Part shown: positions 1-9,007 of the stretch, piece by piece
Layout of the letters: each line of letters starts with the position of its first letter
Position numbering within the stretch: position 1 is the stretch's first letter
Assembly: GCA_024704765.1 (NCBI GenBank)
Contig: JAKMXF010000159.1
Span: forward strand, 3,015-12,021
Length of the DNA: 9,007 nt
Reading direction: 5' to 3'
Origin: Oopsacas minuta
Lineage: Eukaryota > Animalia > Porifera
The notes under the pieces: generated by a model
What the model saw: the letters and a program-made list of their open reading frames with translations, nothing else
Databases searched by the model: none
What the model was told of the DNA's origin: nothing
Made by a program: the position numbers and the translations under genes

Positions 1-73
1 GGTCAAAATAGCCTGGTCTGGATATGACCCTAATTAATCTGAGTTTACTGTTCTAATTAATTATGTAATTATA

Positions 74-389
74 TACGGACCATTTGAAGAATCTTTTCTA
101 AGGAATTACACTCGTCAAATTGTTAGTGGAGTTAAGTATTTACATTCAAAGAATGTAATACACAGGTAAGTACATACGTATACAAGAATATCTTTAATAC
201 GAACAGCAACGGACGCTAGAAATGCTCCCCTATACGATGAACATTAATTAACTATTCGTATATGTTAGAGACGTGAAGGGAGATAACATAATGGTAGAGC
301 CGAGTGGATGCATAAAACTGATAGACTTTGGCTGTGCAAGAGCTTTCATAGATGAATCGGCTACAGCAAGACACATATTGCAGCCATAA
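74..389 (+). pseudogene. STE11/MAP3K19(YSK4)-like kinase fragment A (subdomains V-VII), two exons 74-165 and 269-389, truncated
   Basis: Splicing 166-268 gives [70 protein letters not shown]. HRDxKGxN and DFG motifs are present; IKLIDFGCA is as I recall for MAP3K19. It stops (TAA 387-389) just before the expected GTPYWMAPE segment, and there is no AG acceptor directly before 74. Confidence 0.85.
166..268 (+). other. Spliceosomal intron (103 nt, phase 2, inside the Arg codon of HRD)
   Basis: GTAAGT donor at 166 and TTAG acceptor ending at 268. Removing it restores CAC AG|A GAC = H-R-D. Confidence 0.9.
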
Positions 390-481
390 TTATTCGCTTA
401 TTATTCAATAATTATATTTCTAGGTTACCTAGGTGGGACAATTTCAATGTATACACGTCATATTGTTACTTAATCTTGTAG

Positions 482-1205
482 GAAATAGTATCAATCCTTG
501 GTAAAACAAGAAGCAAAGTAACTCCTTAAAAATCTTGTCTCTCTCCCTCTCTTTCTTCCAAATCCTCTCGTGTACTCTCAGAACAGGCGGAGTGTGACAG
601 GGAATCAGATTATGATAGTGATGAAGATACAACTGAGGTTATTAGATGGAAGAGAGGAGCTGTATTAGGCATTGGAGCATATGGAACAGTTAGTAACTTT
701 ATTATACAGTGTGAGACCTGTGGAAACGGGAACTTCTGAAAACATATACAACGAACTCCTAGTCCCATACAAATGAACCTCCACAAAAGGGGGAACATTT
801 TTCGGCATCTCTGTTACCACACTTATGGAGACAGATTACTAACTATAGTGTAATGGAAGTTACACTGTAGTTAGTAATCTGATACATTTAATACCGATTA
901 TAAGAATATGCTAGATATACGAACTCTGGAAAATTGACCTAAAATATATTTCTATATATTTGATGACAATTAATAGGAACATCCATTGTTACTCCTAAGG
1001 GTGTTCTTATAACCGGCAATAAGTCTAGCGATATTATTAAATATCTCTGCTTAGTCGAGATCACAGCTTAATGGTTAAAATATTTACAGAACCTTTACGA
1101 TAATATGTTGATTAGGTTGTGAGAGGATTAACTCTTGATAAATGAATGATAATAGCAGTGAAGCAGATTGAACTTAACTATTATGATAAAGAGAAAGCAA
1201 TGAAG
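482..1205 (+). pseudogene. MAP3K19-like kinase fragment B (acidic linker plus subdomains I-III), exons ~482-688 and 1116-1205
   Basis: Exon 1 ends ...ESDYDSDEDTTEVIRWKRGAVLGIGAYGT, with donor GTTAGT at 689. After the acceptor (TTAG ending 1115), exon 2 reads VVRGLTLDK*MIIAVKQIELNYYDKEKAMK, with donor GTTGGT at 1206. The phase-0 join gives the Gly-loop GIGAYGTV and the VAVK-type lysine (IAVKQ). In-frame stops at 527-529 (TAA) and 1143-1145 (TGA). Confidence 0.85.
832..881. repeat. 50-nt near-perfect palindrome (22-bp stem, 6-nt loop) inside the kinase intron
   Basis: CAGATTACTAACTATAGTGTAA (832-853), loop TGGAAG, TTACACTGTAGTTAGTAATCTG (860-881). 21 of 22 positions are Watson-Crick and one is G.T. 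Confidence 0.9.
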
Positions 1206-1280
1206 GTTGGTTGTTTCACAGAGATATACGAGTATAACCATACATGAAAATTGAGCATAAATATTTAGATATATTTTTGC

Positions 1281-1331
1281 TTTTACCCGTGGACCACCGA
1301 GGGGTCGATAGCCCCCAGATTGGGACCGTTG
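1281..1331. repeat. GC-rich degenerate repeat remnant related to 7702-7786
   Basis: CCGTGGACCACCGAGGGGT (1287-1305) matches CCGTGGACC-CCAAGGGGT (7765-7782) with one indel and one substitution. It is a GC-rich island in AT-rich DNA. Confidence 0.4.
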
Positions 1332-1529
1332 ATTTGGTTATCGAAATGTTATGCCATGATCAGTTAGCTAACTACCAAAATACACAATAGTTATTTCATC
1401 TGTCAGTCTATTTGTAATTTTGGGGAATTAATATTTAAGTATAGATTCGTAGTACCGAAAATTATGAATATAAAAAGAGTGAAATATGATAATTAATTAC
1501 AAACAAATATGTAAATAACAACAATATAA

Positions 1530-1848
1530 TTAATATATATTCATTGCATTATCACTAAGACTAGCACAAATAATATCAAAGTTATTATTAACAACTATCC
1601 CTCCAGGATTATTACATTTAATTTTGTGTATCAGCTGTCCATCTTTAGTAAATATATTAATTGAATTTCTCCAATTATCGCTAATTATAATATTATTATA
1701 CAAATCAAAACACATAGAAATACTTCCTCTCCCATTTTCTAATTTTATGAAACTTTTCAACAAATCACCTGATTTAGAGAATATGTGTATATAATTAATC
1801 TCATTATTGTCAACAACAAATATCTTATTATTATTTATTTTGACGTCA
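1530..1848 (-). pseudogene. C-terminal NHL-repeat (beta-propeller) blades of a TRIM-NHL-like protein
   Basis: The frame is open from ~1846: DVKINNNKIFVVDNNEINYIHIFSKSGDLLKSFIKLENGRGSISMCFDLYNNIIISDNWRNSINIFTKDGQLIHKIKCNNPGGIVVNNNFDIICASLSDNAMNIY*. It has repeated NHL-type units (I.V.D....I.IF...G..I..I; P.GI.V). The upstream blades are missing. Confidence 0.8.
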
Positions 1849-1849
1849 N

Positions 1850-2161
1850 TACTTTGTTATTCACAAAATACAATTTGGTAACCCAACACAAACCACTGGG
1901 AATAATAATTCTATTTTAATAATTGTGTCAGTTCAGCAGTTTTCTATTCAGAATATTCATTCAATAGAAACTATAAATTCTGTTATAATTGAGAACAAAC
2001 AAAATATACACAATTTCATACCAAACAAACAACAACAAATAATCGATGAAATTATAGCGACACAATTCCCAGAAACTACCAGAGTGCCACAAAGGCCTGA
2101 ACCACTTGCAGAGCCAATCTCTCTCTTCTCAACAGCTACTACCTCTCTTATAGCTTGGTAA
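1850..2161 (+). other. Inverted coding-like segment inside the NHL pseudogene (open frame 1844-2161)
   Basis: The plus frame reads YFVIHKIQFGNPTQTTGNNNSILIIVSVQQFS...PEP. Its start has 11/24 ungapped identities with the last minus-strand NHL blade (1631-1560). The minus strand here loses all NHL resemblance. Confidence 0.4.
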
Positions 2162-2561
2162 TTGGGAACGATTGGTGCCTCCCCCTCTAGGACCTCTCCC
2201 AGTTATGCAATCAGCTGCTCTAAGGGTTTGGATTGGTTCCTAGATACAATATGGGTCTCAGGCTGGTGTGCATTAACCTCTGCTAATTGTAGCTCTATAT
2301 CAGCTAGCATTCCCTCCTGCAGCTCTTGGAGGGCATTCATTTAGGGACGACGCCTCATCTCAGCCTTCATTCCGACCAGTTCCTCAAACTTTTTAATTCG
2401 GTCTAATCTCCTCGCTGCCTATTCATCACGTAGTTCGTGGACCTGTTGAGGAGAGCTGTCCGTCTCTGGTTGAGGCGATAAACCATCCGATCGAATAGCT
2501 CATTGATTTGTGTCTCGATAGGGTCTACGGGAGCAATTACTGGGGAGTTATAATGTGCCAT
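2120..2561 (-). pseudogene. N-terminal coiled-coil half of a RING-less TRIM-NHL-like gene, with frameshift and nonsense lesions
   Basis: ATG at 2561: MAHYNSPVIAPVDPIETQINELFDRMVYRLNQRRTALLN /shift/ VHELRDE*AARRLDRIKKFEELVGMKAEMRRRP*MNALQELQEGMLADIELQLAEVNAHQPETHIVSRNQSKPLEQLIA*LGEVLEGEAPIVPNYQAIREVVAVEKR. It is heptad-rich and resembles the B-box C-terminal coiled coil that precedes NHL repeats. Stops at 2343-2341 and 2205-2203. Confidence 0.75.
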
Positions 2562-2711
2562 TTGTTGTTATTTGTTTCTAAAATTATGAAAAAAGAAAAA
2601 CAGTTAATGAATTGCTATAAACAAATATTCTTGTGTCTCAATACTAGCAGAGCTGTCCTAACTAAATTGTGACATCTCTAGTGTCACCAATATTAATCTA
2701 ATTATTGTATA

Positions 2712-5186
2712 ATGAAACTAAACTGCAAGTATTTCCTTAAAAGGAATTATTCCAGAAAGAATGTGTATCGAGACTTATTGCTTTGTTTGACTCAAAGCTT
2801 GATGATTTGCTCAACAATCAGAATGGAAAATGGGAAATTCCTTTCTAGACAAGAATATGAAGAAATTTTGCATTCATTGGACAAGTGGGAAGATCTGTCT
2901 ACCATACAAAAAGAAAAGATTGGATACCACATACCCAAACGTTACAAAATATTGAAAATTGCAGAAACAAATAATTAAATTTGTTTATCAGCTTCAGACG
3001 TTACCAGTCTAATTCAAGTCACTCATCAGCAACGGGTATTTGAAGATCTGTTGGAGATCTACCCATCATCGGGTCATAGCAAGGGGATAATTTTTTGGAA
3101 GGTTGTAAATACCACCTTCATGGTTTCAAGATCAATAACCGACTTTTTCGTCGCAACATGCCCCACTTGCATTAAAAGATCTGTGCGTAAACCAGGTAGA
3201 GCAGGTCAGGGCCGTATCCAGAGCGTAGTATTAGGAGGGGTTAAGTAAACTTTAGGGGGGGCTTGGATACTTAAGATTTTTATATCTATTTTGGGGTAGG
3301 CCCATACCCAAACTCCCAAGCTACTTTGGAGGAAGGTAAAATTACTTGGTTCATAAATATTCAGACAACTATGGCATTCTATAGTTTCGCTTAGTAATCG
3401 TAAAAAGTATTCAAACTGGAAGGAATATATGTTGTGGTCATATAAAAACAAAAAATATATTTTCAATGGTCGCTGTAAGAGCATCCATATAATTAGTATA
3501 TTCACTACTAGCAAGATTAATTAGATAACTAAAATGTAGTAAATTTGACATAATCACAAAGATTTCCTTGATTTAACTAATACTTAGGATCTAAGATAGT
3601 AAAGATCAATATAGCTTTGCAAAAATTTACGGGGTGGTTAAATTTCCTAGGGGGAGCTCAGCCCCCCCCTATCTACGGCCCTGGAGCAGGTCACATCCCG
3701 ATATTGACGAAAGGTTTCGGGAGTCGAGACCAAGTGGACCTGATTGACTTTCAAAGTTGTCCGGGCGGACGTTTTAAATTTCTTTTGGTCTATCAAGATC
3801 ATGGAATCAAGTTTACAGATTGCAAAAGTCTAGAGTCGAAGAGAAGTGTTTCAGTGGTGTTTGCATTGTTAGATATTTTACTCTGATCGGCGCTCCGGCT
3901 GTATTACAAACTGACAAAGGTAGAGAGTTCGAAGGTGCAGCAGGAAAATCGTGACACTTTACTGTTGATGATTTATGTGAAATTATAACCGAAATACGTT
4001 GCTTGTAGCCTGAGCGTAAAATTGTACATGGCCGACCGCGTCATTCCGAATCTCAAGGTGGGGTGGAGCGCCTAAACAGAACTTATGAGCAAAATATCTC
4101 AGTTTTGTTGGAGGAAAACCAATCTCGAAATTGGTCGGTAGGTTGTAATTTCAAGATGGCAGATAAATACTTAATTTCATACAGTAGTAAAGAATATATC
4201 ATACATTCCTGCATTCAGGCAGAGATCTAGATGTGGTATTTCGTCTCTTCCTTTATCACCTGAGTTAATGTGCTCGCTGGCAACTGAAGCACAACTGAAT
4301 GCAGCACTAAATCTCCCTGAAGACTGCCATATTGAAGATTCTTATTTTTCATGGACAAGTGACCATCAAATTATTGATACGACTCTGTAGGTTGAAGACT
4401 ATAATAATGTTTGTGAAGACAACCTAATAATCCAAATACCAACGTCGCTTTTGAAGTCAACAAATTTGGAGGAATTTTTCAGCCTTCTCCAATTGATGAT
4501 AATCTTCCGGATGAAAATCCTTCAATCGTCAACGAAAATAGTACTAGAGATACAACATTATTAGAAGTTAGAATCCATGAACTTTCTACAACTAATACTA
4601 GTAGTGCAGGGGCGACTTATGTCAATACGTCATTAGATTTACTACAGAATGACCAAGTCGAATCTCCTAATCGACGAGAATTACGTAAAAGGGCTGCTGA
4701 ATCGCTAATTATACAAGGTGAACGCATGAAAAGAGTGCAAGAAGATCAGATGGGATAGCCGAACTTCCTATAGGGACCATTGTACAGATTTCAGTGAAGG
4801 ATATTGACAGAGCCAAAACTGACTCAACTAACGCCACGTTTATTGTTGTCGAGAAAACCTCTGGAAAAGATTCCTCATTCGAGAAATATAGGCTGGGATG
4901 TCATACTGGTCCTAAACAATATCTACGATCGAAGTGAATTATCTCCTTGTCTAAATGTAACACCAACAGCAATGGGGGTACAATCAACTTTAGAAATTGG
5001 AGAGGTTCACCGAGATGTGGAATTAGAGCTGCGATGCGAACTGTATCAATGATGGGCGGGCAAGGTATGCTCAGATGTGACTGTAAAGAAAATTGTAAAA
5101 GTAAGAAGTGTAGATGCTATCGAGGTGGAAGAATATGCAATTCTCGCTGTCATAAACAAAACAGCAGGAGCAAAAACCACGATTGA
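2712..5186 (+). mobile_element. Decayed Ginger2/Tdd-like DNA transposon transposase (KRBA2/SCAND3-type integrase) pseudogene
   Basis: Reassembled across stops and frameshifts: Zn-finger remnant (Y)xxxGH...CPTC (3060-3170); integrase core QVDLID (3731-3748), LQTDKGREF (D at 3913) and HGRPRHSESQGGVERLN (E at 4066); later ELPIGTIVQISVKDIDRAKTD and KYRLG; C-terminal GGQGMLRCDCKENCKSKKCRCYRGGRICNSRCH. There are no RT, RNase H or LTR remnants nearby. Termini were not identified. Confidence 0.85.
3207..3683. mobile_element. Non-autonomous hAT-superfamily MITE (477 bp) inserted in the transposase
   Basis: Perfect 10-bp TIRs CAGGGCCGTA (3207-3216) and TACGGCCCTG (3674-3683). Perfect 8-bp TSD GAGCAGGT (3199-3206 and 3684-3691). 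Removing the element and one TSD restores the frame ...RKPGRAG|HIPILTKGFG. G-rich subterminal direct repeats at ~3234-3263 and 3631-3658. Confidence 0.95.
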
Positions 5187-5218
5187 TTAAGCTTATAATT
5201 AGTTGTATTTATTAGAAT

Positions 5219-5257
5219 GCTGAATAGTTAGATCTATTCAGCTACGAATTACTCTAG
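5219..5257 (+). mobile_element. Candidate Helitron-like 3' terminus
   Basis: Perfect 9-bp stem GCTGAATAG/CTATTCAGC (5219-5242, 6-nt loop), 11-nt spacer, CTAG (5254-5257), then T. No 5' end or Rep/helicase is seen. Confidence 0.3.
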
Positions 5258-5750
5258 TATGGAATTAGTGTAGTAGTAATCTCAAATGTCGGCGATTATA
5301 CATATGTATATTCAGTAGATATTTCATACAGTAAAATGGAATTAGAGGAAAGGTGGGAGATGTGAAATATTTCAATATTATAAGAGCAAACGTTTAGAGA
5401 GATAAATGGAATTTAATAGCTCAGAATACTAGAAATATAAATATGTTGCAACGGAATTCGAAAACTCTATCTGTCGATTCAAAAAAAGTGAACAAATTTC
5501 CAAAGTTGAATCTATAAAATCAACAAAACATATTAATTTCTATGAATAATTCAATTATCATTTATTGTGCTTTGTTTTCTAATGATTTGAAACCAAAATT
5601 GAATGATTATTACGTCATCTAATATCACAATTAGTTACAGTCAAAAGGTGTTAGAAACAATCCCAATGGAACTCAATTTCTGCAGGACAATACAGATAAT
5701 AATATACANGTACAGAGCGCATACAGTTAGCCACACAATACTCTATTATG

Positions 5751-5758
5751 TATAAATA
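5751..5758 (+). promoter_or_regulatory. Putative TATA box of the b5-fusion gene
   Basis: TATAAATA lies 9 nt before the first ATG (5768) and 36 nt before the second in-frame ATG (5795), which would favour 5795 as the true start. The AT-rich context limits significance. Confidence 0.3.
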
Positions 5759-5767
5759 TGATAAATA

Positions 5768-7345
5768 ATGTTAGTAGTGATAGCACATACTTCGATGGAT
5801 TCTACTGTAGGATTGATAGTTGGTGTAATATTCTCTCTATGTGTAGTGTTACTCACTAAATTCATTGGGCCTAACCTCAGAAAGAATTTCACACCTCTGC
5901 CTGTATGGCGTGGTGTCTTGTGGTACAGATGGAAGTCTCTACCTTCCCAACAAGCTCTGAATTTCTCACCTTTTACCGGTATTAAATTCCCTTACTCTTT
6001 GAATGTTAGAGCTAAATCTGCCTGGCTCGGATTCATCCTACATTTTATATTTATGACATTCATGATCACCTGGGCAAAGATCCGTTACTCTACTCACCAT
6101 ACTCACAACTGTCCTGTACCTACTGCCCCCAGCTGGTGTGATTATACTAATAAGCTAGAAATAATACACTATGTGTTCCTTATTGGTACTGCTATATTCG
6201 TAATACTCCATCTGCTACAGACACATTATAGTTATGATGGAATAGCTCAAGATGCAGCTGAGATGGTACCTATAATAGGAACTGTTTTGTCCCTTGTTGT
6301 ACTAGCTCTCATGCAGCAGACAGAGAGAGGATTAGTATTCGGATACGGACTAGACACAGAGACATTTATTGCATTAACTAACATAGCTAGAAGGTTCCAC
6401 CCATTCATTGTAGGATGGGACATAGTATTCACATTCTGGTACCATCCTATGGAAGGAGGAGTACATCATATCCCCGGGTTACTCCCTCTCCTCTGTATAT
6501 TCATACAGGGATGTTTATTATTCACAACTGTACATCTTAATCCTATATGGAGAGTAGCATTAGAACTACTAGGATTCCCTCATGCTATATATATTGAATA
6601 TTCACATCCAGAGAGGGGTAGATGGAAAATGTTCCTCACAGGGGTCCTCTTAACACCTATAGTCGTACACTTCCATATGTTCAATATGTCCTTTATCCTA
6701 ACAACCAGTCTGCTAGTTTGTTATGTTACTCTAGTGGTGGTATTGTATAGAGATATGCCTTGGTATAGATGGACAGAACCACTTCATTTTCCTTGTATAA
6801 TATTTCTACTAATCTTCCTGGTATATGGCATAATGTATATACCCTATAGTGTTACTAATGTGTTAGGAATGTGGCCTGAAGTGTCAACTAGTGGCGCTAT
6901 ACCCTCTGGATTCAATCTAGCTGTGTGGATATGTGGAACATTCCTTGTGGTATCTATCGTTGTCATGACTTTCGTGCTAGCAGATCTATTAGAAGGCATA
7001 GCACGTAATTACGCTAGCACGGTAGGTGACATGAACTCTAATGTAGCTAAAGTATTCCGTATGGGGAATGACACTAATAATCATAATATACGTATGCATG
7101 ATCTACCTGTTGTTACCTTGGATGAGGTAGCTAGACATAACACTAAAAATGATGCTTGGATTGTTATTAACAAATATGTGTATGACGTCACCAATTTTAT
7201 TGACTACCATCCAGGATCTAGAGCTATACTCCTGGAGCAGTGCGGGAGAGATGGTACAGCAGCGTTTGATGGGATCAAATGGGGTACAGGACATCCTGTT
7301 GGTACCATTTCTGATATGAAAGGATTACTGTGTGGTAGACTATAG
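5768..7345 (+). CDS. Uncharacterised multi-pass (~11 TM) histidine-rich membrane protein with a C-terminal cytochrome b5-like heme-binding domain; intact and intronless
   Basis: Uninterrupted 525-codon ORF with ~11 hydrophobic segments in aa 13-405. Motifs LHLLQTHYSYDGIAQD, RGLVFG, TFWYHPME and HLNPIW. The b5 fold occupies aa ~448-525. A T-rich 3' region with AATAAA follows. The start could be 5795. Confidence 0.92.
   Translation: MLVVIAHTSMDSTVGLIVGVIFSLCVVLLTKFIGPNLRKNFTPLPVWRGVLWYRWKSLPSQQALNFSPFTGIKFPYSLNVRAKSAWLGFILHFIFMTFMITWAKIRYSTHHTHNCPVPTAPSWCDYTNKLEIIHYVFLIGTAIFVILHLLQTHYSYDGIAQDAAEMVPIIGTVLSLVVLALMQQTERGLVFGYGLDTETFIALTNIARRFHPFIVGWDIVFTFWYHPMEGGVHHIPGLLPLLCIFIQGCLLFTTVHLNPIWRVALELLGFPHAIYIEYSHPERGRWKMFLTGVLLTPIVVHFHMFNMSFILTTSLLVCYVTLVVVLYRDMPWYRWTEPLHFPCIIFLLIFLVYGIMYIPYSVTNVLGMWPEVSTSGAIPSGFNLAVWICGTFLVVSIVVMTFVLADLLEGIARNYASTVGDMNSNVAKVFRMGNDTNNHNIRMHDLPVVTLDEVARHNTKNDAWIVINKYVYDVTNFIDYHPGSRAILLEQCGRDGTAAFDGIKWGTGHPVGTISDMKGLLCGRL
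7109..7342 (+). other. Cytochrome b5-like heme/steroid-binding domain
   Basis: TLDEVARHNTKNDAWIVINKYVYDVTNFIDYHPGSRAILLEQCGRDGTAAF...GHP: canonical W.vi...VYDvT.f...HPG signature. Both predicted axial histidines are retained (H481 at 7208-7210, and H509). Confidence 0.93.
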
Positions 7346-7475
7346 GTTACTATTTGTATCTTATTTCTTTTCACTGATTTACTAGTATTTACTATCAGCT
7401 TTGTTATTATTCTTAAGTGTGCTAATTAGTAATAATTGTTTGTATTTGTTACTATTTGTTGTTTCGATTATCATT

Positions 7476-7481
7476 AATAAA
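7476..7481 (+). terminator. Putative polyadenylation signal
   Basis: AATAAA 130 nt downstream of the stop codon, within a T-rich 3' UTR-like tract. Confidence 0.45.
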
Positions 7482-7701
7482 CTGATCCTACCTCATTCTT
7501 GTTATCATGTTAAGGTTACAGTATACCTTGATTAATCCTAACAGCTGGGTATAATGCTGAAGTAATCTTTTGAAATGTTCTAACACTTCCCAAATATATC
7601 TAATTTATTGCTTATTATTACGTCATACATATCATATTTGTTATAATTCTAGTCACTAAACTAACGGTATTCAGGACTTTTCAGATTAGCTAGAGGGTAT
7701 G

Positions 7702-7786
7702 CAGCAACGGATCCTGACTTTTTAAACCCAATTCTAACACATTCTGGGGACCCCCTGCTGTCATCCGTGGACCCCAAGGGGTAACA
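7702..7786. repeat. Degenerate transposon-end/MITE remnant
   Basis: A GC-rich island starting CAGCAACGGATCCTGACTTTTT (hAT-MITE-like opening), containing GGACCCC motifs and ending GGGGTAACA (reverse complement TGTTACCCC, an integrase-type terminus). No convincing TSD. Confidence 0.35.
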
Positions 7787-8240
7787 CTGTTATAAATTGA
7801 AATGATAGAACAATTTCGTAATTTCTCAAATAAAACAAATGTTGTTTACACCTTGTGTCAACAAATTTGAATGTATTATATTTGTGTGTATTATCTTCTC
7901 CATTCAGTAGTCCTACTTTAGGATTCCTCCTCTTCCTTTTAAGATAATTCCTAGGCAGATTGCTAATGATGTTCCTCTCCCTTGCTTTTACTCTACATAG
8001 CATTATCATACAGCATACAGCTGATAAGATTAGTATTACACCAATACATAAGTGGATTAGTAGAAATATCATCGGCATTGGATCTATTGGAATATAGTAG
8101 AATTCGGATAGGACGTATCCTGGATCTACTCCTAGACAAGAGGACCCTTACTACGCCCCTATGTCCCCTACAGGCACACAATCTAGACCCCAGGACACTT
8201 CTACTAGCCATCAGTATAATACTTTGAAGTGAAGCTTCAT
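7761..8240 (-). pseudogene. Remnant of a single-pass membrane protein (TM helix plus basic juxtamembrane segment)
   Basis: IFLLIHLCIGVILILSAVCCMIMLC (8069-7995) is followed by RVKARERN...KRKRRNPK, with CTA/GTA/ATA codon usage like the intact gene. The same frame extends to an ATG at 8240 with a signal-peptide-like MKLHFKVLY*WLVEVSWG, but has three stops (8213-8211, 8153-8151, 8150-8148). Confidence 0.5.
8101..8232 (+). other. Possible terminal exon of a tyrosine-motif cytoplasmic tail (alternative reading of the same DNA)
   Basis: After an AG at 8099-8100: NSDRTYPGSTPRQEDPYYAPMSPTGTQSRPQDTSTSHQYNTLK*. It is S/T/P-rich with YAPM and YNTL motifs, followed by a T-rich tract. Confidence 0.35.
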
Positions 8241-8438
8241 TTACTTGTTTTTACGTTTGTATATATATTGAATTCGAATATTGTATATTTGTAGTTATAA
8301 ATTACATTAAGTATTGTGTAATGCGAATTTTATTGTTTATAATTCAAGCAATTTTCTTGCTATTTCTATCGCTTAGTGTAAGGTTCTAAACACTAACTTC
8401 ATTCTTAGTAATAATATTACAATATTCCATCGTTTAGG

Positions 8439-8479
8439 ACAAGGGCGCTCAAACGGTGGCCCTTGTAGCATTTTGCTTG
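8439..8479 (+). mobile_element. Candidate degenerate Helitron 3' terminus
   Basis: GC-rich 8-bp stem ACAAGGGC/GCCCTTGT (8439-8466), 9-nt spacer AGCATTTTG, then CTTG|T, one mismatch from CTAG|T. Confidence 0.3.
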
Positions 8480-9007
8480 TATTTCCAAAAAAGGTGTATA
8501 CTAATTTGTGAAGAAATACTAGTCTTTTTAACCTTATTTCTACAGTATTGGCATAACTCTTCAATTCTATTGAATAGAGTGGGAGTATAACCGTTATCTT
8601 CAGTAATTATTAATGATAAAATGATGTATAGGATAAGTAAATGGACAGAAAATACCTCTAAAATATCAGAATATATATTTCCAACTAAGAATTGACTTTA
8701 AATGTTATTAACTGTTTAACCTCAAACCAGCACTGATAACAAGCAAAGAATACAAGAAAGCATAAACCAAATTCAAAGACATTAAATGTCATTCAAAGTA
8801 GAATTACATTTCAAAAATATAGAATCCATTGTTATGCAATATTCTGACAAATTGTATAGCTTGTGAATACATGAATCTAACACCAAATGTGATGTAAGAT
8901 ATGTGGCATGAAAGATGCTACAAAACTTTGTGTGTAATCACTAGATATTAAAGTTTGATAACATCATCTGCTTGTCCCATCGGCATTTTCGTAGAGCTGC
9001 TATGATT

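Follow-up and report, generated by a model that had tools for sequence, protein, structure and literature searches.

A nameless, mostly bacterial family of membrane proteins has been joined to cytochrome b5 in sponges, fungi and protists, and the recurrence of these fusions suggests that its members are membrane redox proteins of a kind not yet described. The member described here is encoded in a sponge, within a window of 9,007 nucleotides (the whole stretch of DNA that was analysed), and its product would consist of a cytosolic b5 domain tied, via an added eleventh transmembrane (TM) helix, to a ten-helix core. The explanation favoured for this core, if only tentatively, is a redox module fed by b5, in which histidines would hold cofactors in two layers, one by each membrane face.

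Gene and protein architecture

The gene forms a single uninterrupted ORF (Table 1). Its start codon is probably the second methionine, which would give a 516-aa protein, because the homologues all begin at this residue and a TATAAATA box with a putative promoter role lies upstream of it. None of the seven other ORFs of the window has a Pfam match. The depth of run X1, whose type (RNA or DNA) is a guess, climbs within the 5712-5825 bin and stands at ~6,000-26,000 over 5826-7307, compared with ~40 in the flanks. The peak is restricted to the gene and crosses the border between the TM and b5 parts without joint or break. The sequence-only reading would have given up the fusion had transcripts separated the two parts; with depth in this run of guessed type continuous across the border, both parts appear to belong to one expressed unit.

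The same reading had described a protein with about 11 TM helices fused to b5, and this description holds. AlphaFold2 (AF2) places 11 long helices ahead of the b5 domain (mean pLDDT 86.9, pTM 0.88), comprising the ten helices of the core and the eleventh TM helix, and the b5 domain itself is complete. The latter matches Pfam Cyt-b5 (PF00173) at ORF aa 450-509 (E 1.5e-18, 67 bits for a cut-off of 23.7), superposes in its predicted form on bovine b5 (1f03; Z 10.5, rmsd 1.4 A, 77 residues), and matches by sequence the b5 of Scs7 (4zr0). Both haem-ligand histidines, of the HPGG and GHS types, are kept as had been claimed (ORF H481 and H509, that is, H472 and H500) and are invariant in all 11 aligned fused b5 domains, and a 4-residue insertion precedes the second ligand, H500, in the sponge-type clade. 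With both ligands invariant and the fold complete, the domain looks haem-competent. In loop 2 of the core, Cys106 and Cys115 may form a disulfide bond, with a putative lumenal location.

Table 1. Features of the sponge gene and its product; nucleotide positions are those of the window, and residue numbers, unless marked ORF, those of the 516-aa protein
Feature	Position	Strand	Basis or remark
ORF of the sequence-only reading	5768..7345	+	complete, 525 aa, stop codon within; ORF read
Probable true CDS	5795..7345	+	intronless, 516 aa, begins MDS...; gene call, and 7/7 fused homologues share this Met; translation checked
TATAAATA box	5751..5758	+	~37 bp 5' of the probable start codon; sequence read directly
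Ten-helix membrane core of the unnamed family, aa 1-357	5795..6865	+	AF2 helices; stand-alone bacterial homologues of 332-352 aa
Loop 1, aa 27-74	5873..6016	+	mean Lys+Arg 9.5 in the sponge clade vs 2.5 in bacteria
His83 codon, TM2	6041..6043	+	100% of occupied columns
Loop 2 Cys106 and Cys115	6110..6139	+	Cys pair whose conservation is limited to the C-terminal-fusion clade
Arg178 codon, end of TM4	6326..6328	+	invariant; ERGLxFG motif
Signature core H202-x14-H217-x7-H225-x21-H247-x15-H263, TM5 to TM7	6398..6583	+	spacing invariant
Eleventh helix, aa 375-410	6917..7024	+	missing in bacterial members; predicted to return the chain across the membrane to b5
Linker, aa 411-435	7025..7099	+	lower pLDDT, 61-81
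Cytochrome b5 domain, aa 436-516	7100..7342	+	haem ligands H472 (7208-7210) and H500 (7292-7294)

A widespread family and its conserved histidines

The membrane core belongs to a family of 251 clusters at 50% identity, with at least 3,384 bacterial clusters at 90%, whose members are annotated everywhere as 'hypothetical'; the bacterial family search used an alignment of 19 bacterial sequences. In bacteria the family is found in Chloroflexota, Pseudomonadota, Actinomycetota, Deinococcota, Verrucomicrobiota and Planctomycetota, and its eukaryotic range includes early fungi, protists and several animal phyla. The sponge core is homologous to the stand-alone bacterial members across all ten helices (phmmer E 1e-26 to 1e-10), and structural comparison with bacterial Atlas clusters gives TM-scores of 0.87-0.90. 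The sponge protein also carries the family signature (YDGLAQD, RGLxFG, TFWYHPME and HxNxxW), and the four motifs named in the sequence-only reading are all there, as HLLQTHYSYDGIAQD, ERGLVFG, TFWYHPME and HLNPIW. The picture given in that reading, of an uncharacterised, stand-alone bacterial family with sporadic homologues, is borne out by the phmmer homology, the family being mostly bacterial with scattered eukaryotic members.

Beyond its own members, the family is without recognizable relatives in the collections searched. The membrane domain has no match among Pfam and NCBIfam models, PDB sequences, or solved and Swiss-Prot folds, an NCBIfam match to CrcB being noise (14 bits for a cut-off of 118). 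With the core alone as query, Foldseek gave E values of at least 0.14 against the PDB and of at least 0.087 against Swiss-Prot models, with all TM-scores below 0.2, and the best Z in VIA-align was 7.4. The family profile found nothing among PDB sequences, so that a confident match to a characterised non-redox family, which would have spoken against a redox role, came from neither Pfam, Foldseek, VIA-align nor the profile. No internal 5+5 repeat was detected in the core (hhalign probability 0.5%), and no description of the family was found in the literature.

The histidines that first drew attention to the protein (ORF H92, H134, H148/H153, H211, H226, H233/H234, H256, H272, H301/H303 and H340) each lie at the position given, and part of the list is conserved family-wide, namely ORF H92, H148, H211, H226, H234, H256 and H272. 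The remainder is not, since ORF H153 is conserved in 55% and H134, H233, H301, H303 and H340 are confined to particular lineages. Six or seven histidines are thus near-invariant across the family, with conservation of 100% for H83, 99% for H202, 100% for H217, 92% for H225, 99% for H247 and 96% for H263; R178 reaches 100%, and D148, Q238 and E257 are also conserved. The pattern H-x14-H-x29-H-x15-H, formed by the four histidines of TM5 and TM7, occurs in 330 of the 338 full-length members as against 4 of 6,760 shuffles. From helix boundaries and hydrophobicity, H83, H139/H144, H217, H225, H263, D148 and E220 are assigned to a layer on face B, and R178, H202, Q238, H247 and E257 to a second conserved layer on the opposite face; in the AF2 model, H247 sits in a short turn ahead of TM7, outside the continuous helix that bears H263.

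Recurrent b5 fusions and membrane orientation

Seven fused homologues, with 39-72% identity, share the architecture of the sponge protein. The C-terminal b5 fusions make up one clade, the sponge clade (SH-aLRT 98), and N-terminal b5 fusions fall at two separate places in the tree, one of them a clade among early fungi. This amounts to three or more gains of b5, one at the C-terminus, in the sponge clade, and two at the N-terminus. The b5 fusion had been taken as a Rosetta-stone clue to the function of the whole family, and the clue is strengthened by the presence of b5 at the other terminus in two further clades.

The two architectures would also differ in the membrane face that b5 meets. Because b5 lies directly ahead of TM1 in the N-terminal fusions, and the sponge clade has an odd number of helices before it, helix counting would place it on opposite faces of the core, provided that every core helix crosses the membrane. 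The Lys+Arg counts on faces A and B are 13.0 and 5.0 in bacteria, 16.6 and 5.0 in the N-terminal fusions, and 5.7 and 14.5 in the sponge clade, in which the positive-inside charge bias is therefore reversed. Since loop 1 is much richer in these residues in the sponge clade than in bacteria (Table 1), the sponge-clade core appears to be inverted in the membrane. There was no support for a preferential loss of conserved residues, in the sponge clade, from the face that would have lost contact with the donor (Fisher p = 0.44). Tethering of b5 to opposite faces would suit a core that has redox sites by each of them, and a single desaturase-style metal centre would fit it poorly. The earlier inference of a heme- or non-heme-iron oxidoreductase thus gains from the recurrent b5 fusions, but loses ground where it implies such a single centre.

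In its simplest form, the favoured b5-fed module would be a transmembrane relay of two b-type haems on TM5 and TM7, each helix giving one histidine to each putative layer (H202 and H217 from TM5, H247 and H263 from TM7). A further pocket of polar residues on face B (H83, H139, H225, Y147, D148 and E220) may bind substrate or metal. In eukaryotes, electrons would flow into the core from b5, which would receive them from the usual b5 reductase of the cytosol, and in bacteria the donor would be a separate protein. More doubtful is the complete proposal of a new transmembrane multi-centre redox class, carrying a pair of haems on TM5 and TM7 and, in addition, a His/Asp/Glu site, spread across bacteria and wired to b5 at least three times in eukaryotes, in which the sponge core would have been flipped and given an eleventh helix, with b5 feeding the face opposite to that used in fungal-type fusions.

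Gene neighbourhoods in bacteria, where redox partners had been thought worth seeking, contained no b5, ferredoxin or flavin reductase genes in 80 loci, nor any dedicated electron-transfer partner. They do contain genes for lineage-specific NAD(P)H enzymes and for MFS transporters, the latter being the commonest operon neighbours. Rhodospirillaceae show aldo/keto reductase, MFS and NmrA-like genes, Chloroflexota DAG-kinase-like and beta-eliminating lyase genes, and SDR enzymes are also found. For the lipid or sterol substrate once suggested, nothing in the analysis points in that direction.

Alternative explanations and comparison with known systems

The sequence-only reading had leaned towards a non-haem iron oxygenase of the membrane, with either a di-iron or a mononuclear site, analogous in function to fatty-acid desaturases and hydroxylases, with the face-B residues forming one b5-reduced centre for O2 chemistry on a hydrophobic substrate. 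This explanation now seems rather unlikely, although several observations agree with it. Five conserved His, one Asp and one Glu would share a single layer, a ligand count equal to that of hemerythrin-type di-iron sites, and b5 fused at either end is a hallmark of membrane di-iron enzymes. The fungal Ole1-type b5 fusion is an example (bioRxiv 10.64898/2026.10.23.760519). In addition, one family member (P0075) is fused to an alpha/beta hydrolase, a divergently transcribed P450 gene adjoins the family gene in one species, and the aldo/keto reductase, NmrA-like and SDR neighbours would be compatible with an oxygenase. However, of the His boxes of desaturases and hydroxylases (HX3-4H, HX2-3HH and (H/Q)X2-3HH), HX2-3HH is absent and the only box-like element is HLLQTH (HX4H), whose first histidine, H139 (ORF H148), is Arg in three fused members and whose second, H144 (ORF H153), is just 55% conserved. 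FA_desaturase (PF00487) and FA_hydroxylase (PF04116) match neither the sponge protein nor 44 long members nor, up to E 10, the 19 bacterial members, in line with the earlier statement that this is not a standard desaturase or hydroxylase. Moreover, an oxygenase would leave the second conserved layer (R178, H202, Q238, H247 and E257) unexplained, and the b5 of the N-terminal fusions would lie on the other face, distant from the proposed centre.

A little less likely again is that the core has no redox role and works as a transporter, as a membrane acyltransferase or hydrolase or as a receptor-like protein, with b5 in a ligand-binding or regulatory role and the histidines catalytic, acid-base or structural. 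Ten-helix membrane proteins are often transporters, MFS genes are the most frequent neighbours, and Foldseek returned weak matches to LeuT/APC transporters, albeit with TM-scores of 0.12-0.19 and E > 0.1. One AFDB cluster match is automatically named 'Acyltransferase 3 domain-containing protein' (TM-score 0.57/0.70), and Acyltransferase_3 is, like the core, a ten-helix membrane domain. Yet no member matches PF01757 or a transporter family up to E 10 (0 of ~70 scanned for PF01757, even at permissive E), the PDB and Swiss-Prot fold matches include no acyltransferase-3 protein, and the entry in AFDB probably belongs to the family and bears a wrong label. Furthermore, every fused b5 retains both haem ligands, unlike the MAPR-type b5-like domains, which are non-redox and do not have both, and at least three independent captures of a haem b5 would be hard to account for without electron transfer. 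Least probable, and by some distance, is a core that handles haem or porphyrin as a substrate for export, insertion, modification or degradation, its histidines binding haem transiently as in CcsBA/CcmF and b5 providing reducing power. The highest-scoring structure outside the family is indeed CcsBA, a haem exporter and cytochrome c synthase (7s9z; Z 7.4-7.8 over ~210 residues), but a Z below 8, with an rmsd of 6.8 A and 7% identity, lies within what the tool itself specifies as noise for helical bundles, and the WWD motif is absent. The gene order ChuX/HutX, P-type ATPase, second ChuX/HutX and family gene in a Rhodospirillaceae genome would also fit haem handling, but is seen in one genome in 80 loci.

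If the family does consist of haem- or iron-containing oxidoreductases, it would stand next to the desaturase/hydroxylase and ferric-reductase families as a new scaffold for catalysis, and an orphan activity in the metabolism of lipids, sterols, quinones or metals could be assigned to it. The b5 fusions provide this nameless family with a cheaply testable hypothesis, the acceptance of electrons, and the apparent inversion of a polytopic enzyme between eukaryotic lineages is of interest for membrane-protein evolution.

Among known systems, the b5-fused di-iron enzymes (front-end desaturases, Ole1-type delta-9 desaturases and FA2H/Scs7) similarly join a haem b5, at a terminus that depends on the lineage, to a His-rich polytopic domain. 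Their membrane domains are not homologous to the core, which has ten helices instead of four and whose conserved histidines are single and deep in helices by both faces rather than grouped in His boxes; in addition, b5 would be tethered on opposite faces in the two architectures of the family. CcsBA, the top solved-structure match, and CcmF are likewise multi-helix proteins with haem-ligating histidines at both faces, but the core has neither the WWD domain nor a Pfam link to them, and the match is no clearer than unrelated ones.

Two-haem transmembrane cytochromes, such as cytochrome b of bc1, NOX/FRO/STEAP and b561/Dcytb, share with the core single histidines within TM helices. No Pfam match links them to the core, and the fold matches to Dcytb, b561, SpNOX and STEAP4 do not rise above noise (Z 4.5-4.7). 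Cytochrome b and NOX-type ferric reductase domains bind two haems through four histidines with a classical spacing of 13/14, compared with 15/16 here, and the core has three further conserved histidines and ten helices rather than six or eight. As in these cytochromes, two helices running in the same direction would each bear a pair of histidines separated by about four turns, one layer per face, with an invariant Arg and aromatic residues close by.

The fused gene and its probable expression

Long ORFs are scarce in the AT-rich window (24-46% GC), the sole one lying on the forward strand. Its second Met (MDS...) is the start in all fused homologues and in the public gene call P0001, and a TATAAATA box is located ahead of it, so the protein probably has 516 aa. 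An ambiguous base (n) is found 86 bp 5' of this probable start codon. The remainder of the window (1-5700 and 7400-9007) holds short ORFs only, some of which may be decayed mobile-element fragments; seven of them were scanned against Pfam without a match.

Features of the window and of the 516-aa protein (conservation over 97 diverse family members; helices and b5 domain from the AlphaFold2 model)
Feature	Position	Remark
Long ORF	5768-7345, + strand	525 aa
TATAAATA box	5751-5758	
Second Met	5795	probable start
Ambiguous base	5709	n
Short ORFs (examples)	2712-2978; 3051-3248; 3617-3886	
Short ORF	4947-5186	Cys-rich
Ten core helices	aa 3-356	
Eleventh helix	aa 375-410	followed by linker
b5 domain	aa 436-516	
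His	H83	100% of occupied columns
His	H139	88%, Arg or Lys otherwise
His	H144	55%
His	H202	99%
His	H217	100%
His	H225	92%
His	H247	99%
His	H263	96%
Arg	R178	invariant
Other residues	Y44, W46, W77, Y147, D148, W215, P218, Q238, W252, E257	each 90% or more
Glu	E220	79%

Cyt-b5 is the only Pfam match of the protein (aa 450-509 of the 525-aa frame, E 1.5e-18), an NCBIfam scan gave a noise-level match only, and PDB sequence matches are confined to the b5 part. The AlphaFold2 model of the whole protein, built from a 97-sequence alignment, is confident (mean pLDDT 86.9, pTM 0.88), and its b5 part fits bovine b5 with an rmsd of 1.4 Å (77 residues, Z 10.5). All 11 aligned fused b5 domains keep the axial histidines, H472 and H500, with a 4-residue insertion ahead of the second one in the sponge-type clade, the members with a C-terminal b5.

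The sequence-only reading had described a membrane protein joined to cytochrome b5, and this is borne out by the single ORF, the Pfam match, and seven homologues of the same architecture (39-72% identity), which are single ORFs on contigs of up to 1.6 Mb. On the 1.6-Mb contig of a relative, two tandem b5-fused paralogues (L012:6001-7548 and L012:9711-11252) lie within 13.5 kb, interleaved with three zf-TRAF genes. Two further cluster members are encoded on this contig, making four, and the family gene is therefore locally expanded in at least one related animal.

The window sequence is present in four public runs (X1-X4), all from one sample. In X1, whose kind was guessed, the summed contig depth is about 6,000-26,000 across 5826-7307 versus about 40 in the flanks, with the increase in the 5712-5825 bin and the drop in the 7308-7421 bin; the analysis reported no joint around 7090-7100, where the TM and b5 parts meet, contig depth being a crude measure. 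This pattern, from runs of uncertain type, fits a discrete intronless transcript spanning both parts. Within 6104-7040, which lies in the ORF, X1 matches the window and the X2-X4 contigs depart from it at about 30 single positions, a pattern suggestive of another allele or of a closely related paralogue. Two X1 contigs start at 5773 and 5845, each after the same 11 unmatched letters (AAAAAACTTAC); these may come from an exon further upstream, from a leader, or from faulty assembly.

A mostly bacterial family

Queried with aa 40-441, an exhaustive phmmer search reached 251 clusters (50% identity) at an E cut-off of 1e-3, of which 128 also passed a cut-off of 1e-10. Starting from the Herpetosiphon aurantiacus member, 3,384 clusters at 90% identity were obtained (E up to 1e-10), none with a precomputed Pfam domain and all named 'hypothetical protein', save the automatic 'Serine active site containing 1-like'. 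The latter name probably stems from fusion to an alpha/beta hydrolase, Abhydrolase_5, found at the C terminus of the bacterial member P0075 (L094:6001-7701), whose gene has a TetR regulator and two ABC exporters downstream. When a single genome was scanned for each species, at least 583 loci were confirmed in Rhodospirillaceae and other Alphaproteobacteria, Gammaproteobacteria, Chloroflexota, Deinococcales, Verrucomicrobiota, and Actinomycetota, with Herpetosiphon, Pseudonocardia, Saccharopolyspora, and Streptosporangium among the cultured carriers. Eukaryotic members include Umbelopsis, Amoeboaphelidium, one EukProt protist, and a 517-aa cluster whose main source is echinoderms.

The family is new to all libraries searched. 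A permissive Pfam scan (E up to 10) of 19 bacterial members pointed to no family that recurs among them, the family profile had no match among PDB sequences, and no description was found in the literature. The fold comparison that the sequence-only reading had proposed, run on a core-only model (pLDDT 88.4, pTM 0.90), found no convincing relative: Foldseek gave a best E of 0.14 in the PDB and TM-scores below 0.2 among Swiss-Prot models (best E 0.087), and the best VIA-align match, CcsBA (Z 7.4, rmsd 6.8 Å), is within the noise of the tool for helical bundles. The matches in the AFDB clusters and the Atlas that reach TM-scores of 0.5-0.9 belong to the family itself and are unnamed. Row 6 of the Atlas search is a 74-member bacterial cluster, most commonly from Actinomycetota, in which Cyt-b5 is joined to DUF2231, a small membrane domain; this further uncharacterised b5-membrane fusion has no relation to the family.

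Electron-transfer partners, for which the earlier reading proposed to check near the bacterial genes, are absent from the neighbourhoods, whose contexts are lineage-specific. Here, 12 Rhodospirillaceae-type loci combine an aldo/keto reductase, the family gene, an MFS transporter, and two NmrA-like genes; about eight Chloroflexota loci hold a DAG-kinase-like gene, the family gene, and a beta-eliminating lyase; and in one species a P450 is divergently transcribed beside it. Among about 80 bacterial loci, the only haem-related neighbourhood (L001:4563-9059, on the 4.4-Mb chromosome of a Rhodospirillaceae MAG) has ChuX/HutX, a P-type ATPase, a second ChuX/HutX, and, directly after them, the family gene, all on the same strand; this genome encodes a second family paralogue.

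Predicted residue layers and probable captures of cytochrome b5

Among the histidines that had been singled out at first, seven are conserved family-wide (H83, H139, H202, H217, H225, H247, and H263 in the 516-aa numbering), whereas H134, H233, H301, H303, and H340 (525-aa numbering) are lineage-specific. The H202-H263 block is free of indels, and 330 of 338 full-length members carry the spacing H-x14-H-x29-H-x15-H, versus 4 of 6,760 shuffled sequences (five-His version, 319 of 338). The H139 column, in TM3, is Arg in three C-terminal-fusion members (P0007, P0008, and P0025); the replacement of His by Arg or Lys in the alignment suggests that this position binds an anionic group, not a metal.

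Face A is the side with the N terminus and loops 2, 4, 6, and 8, and face B the opposite one. Mean K+R counts on faces A and B are 13.0 and 5.0 in stand-alone bacterial members, 16.6 and 5.0 in N-terminal fusions, and 5.7 and 14.5 in sponge-type C-terminal fusions, where loop 1 alone has 9.5. Under the positive-inside rule, and with the helix counts, face A would be cytoplasmic in bacteria and N-terminal fusions, in agreement with the lack of a signal peptide on the N-terminal b5, and face B would be cytosolic in the sponge clade. A Cys pair in loop 2 (face A) is conserved in this clade only. Independently of absolute orientation, if all ten core helices cross the membrane, an N-terminal b5 would be tethered to face A and one following eleven helices to face B. 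The conserved polar residues mapped on the helices fall into a putative face-B layer (H83, H139, Q142, Y147, D148, H217, E220, H225, and H263) and a putative face-A layer (R178, H202, Q238, H247, and E257), with the parallel TM5 and TM7 each giving one His to each layer.

Cyt-b5 is present in 5 of 44 long members, at the C terminus in P0025 and P0026, as in the sponge proteins, and at the N terminus, directly ahead of TM1, in P0072, P0087, and P0104; two additional N-terminal fusions were found besides these five. A maximum-likelihood phylogeny of the core unites the C-terminal fusions in a single clade (SH-aLRT 98) and puts the N-terminal ones in two separately supported places: P0087 is nested in a clade made up of long eukaryote-like proteins, and P0072 groups with P0104 among proteins related to fungal ones. 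Fusions at the two ends are necessarily separate events and, given these two places, the tree favours at least three acquisitions, although an N-terminal b5 may have been gained once and then lost repeatedly.

Possible roles of the core

Because a ligand-competent haem b5 appears to have been captured independently three or more times, the core probably accepts electrons, which strengthens the redox role first proposed. A desaturase-like picture with one centre is not supported: a single-site di-iron oxygenase, an unlikely reading, would leave both the face-A residue layer and a b5 at face A unexplained. The suggested lipid or sterol substrate finds no support in the data, nothing in which identifies a substrate. 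Weaker than the oxygenase are a non-redox core, which we consider improbable given the repeated captures, and a role in haem handling, to which the CcsBA match and the single ChuX/HutX neighbourhood would point and which seems very improbable.

A b5 that may stand at either face and two putative His layers bridged by TM5 and TM7 fit a redox relay that would span the membrane and have cofactors close to each face. In the simplest version these would be two b haems, for which cytochrome b and NOX-type domains are the analogues, and the leftover face-B residues would form a catalytic or metal site. This combination of a two-haem-type relay and a face-B site is offered tentatively, at somewhat short of an even chance.
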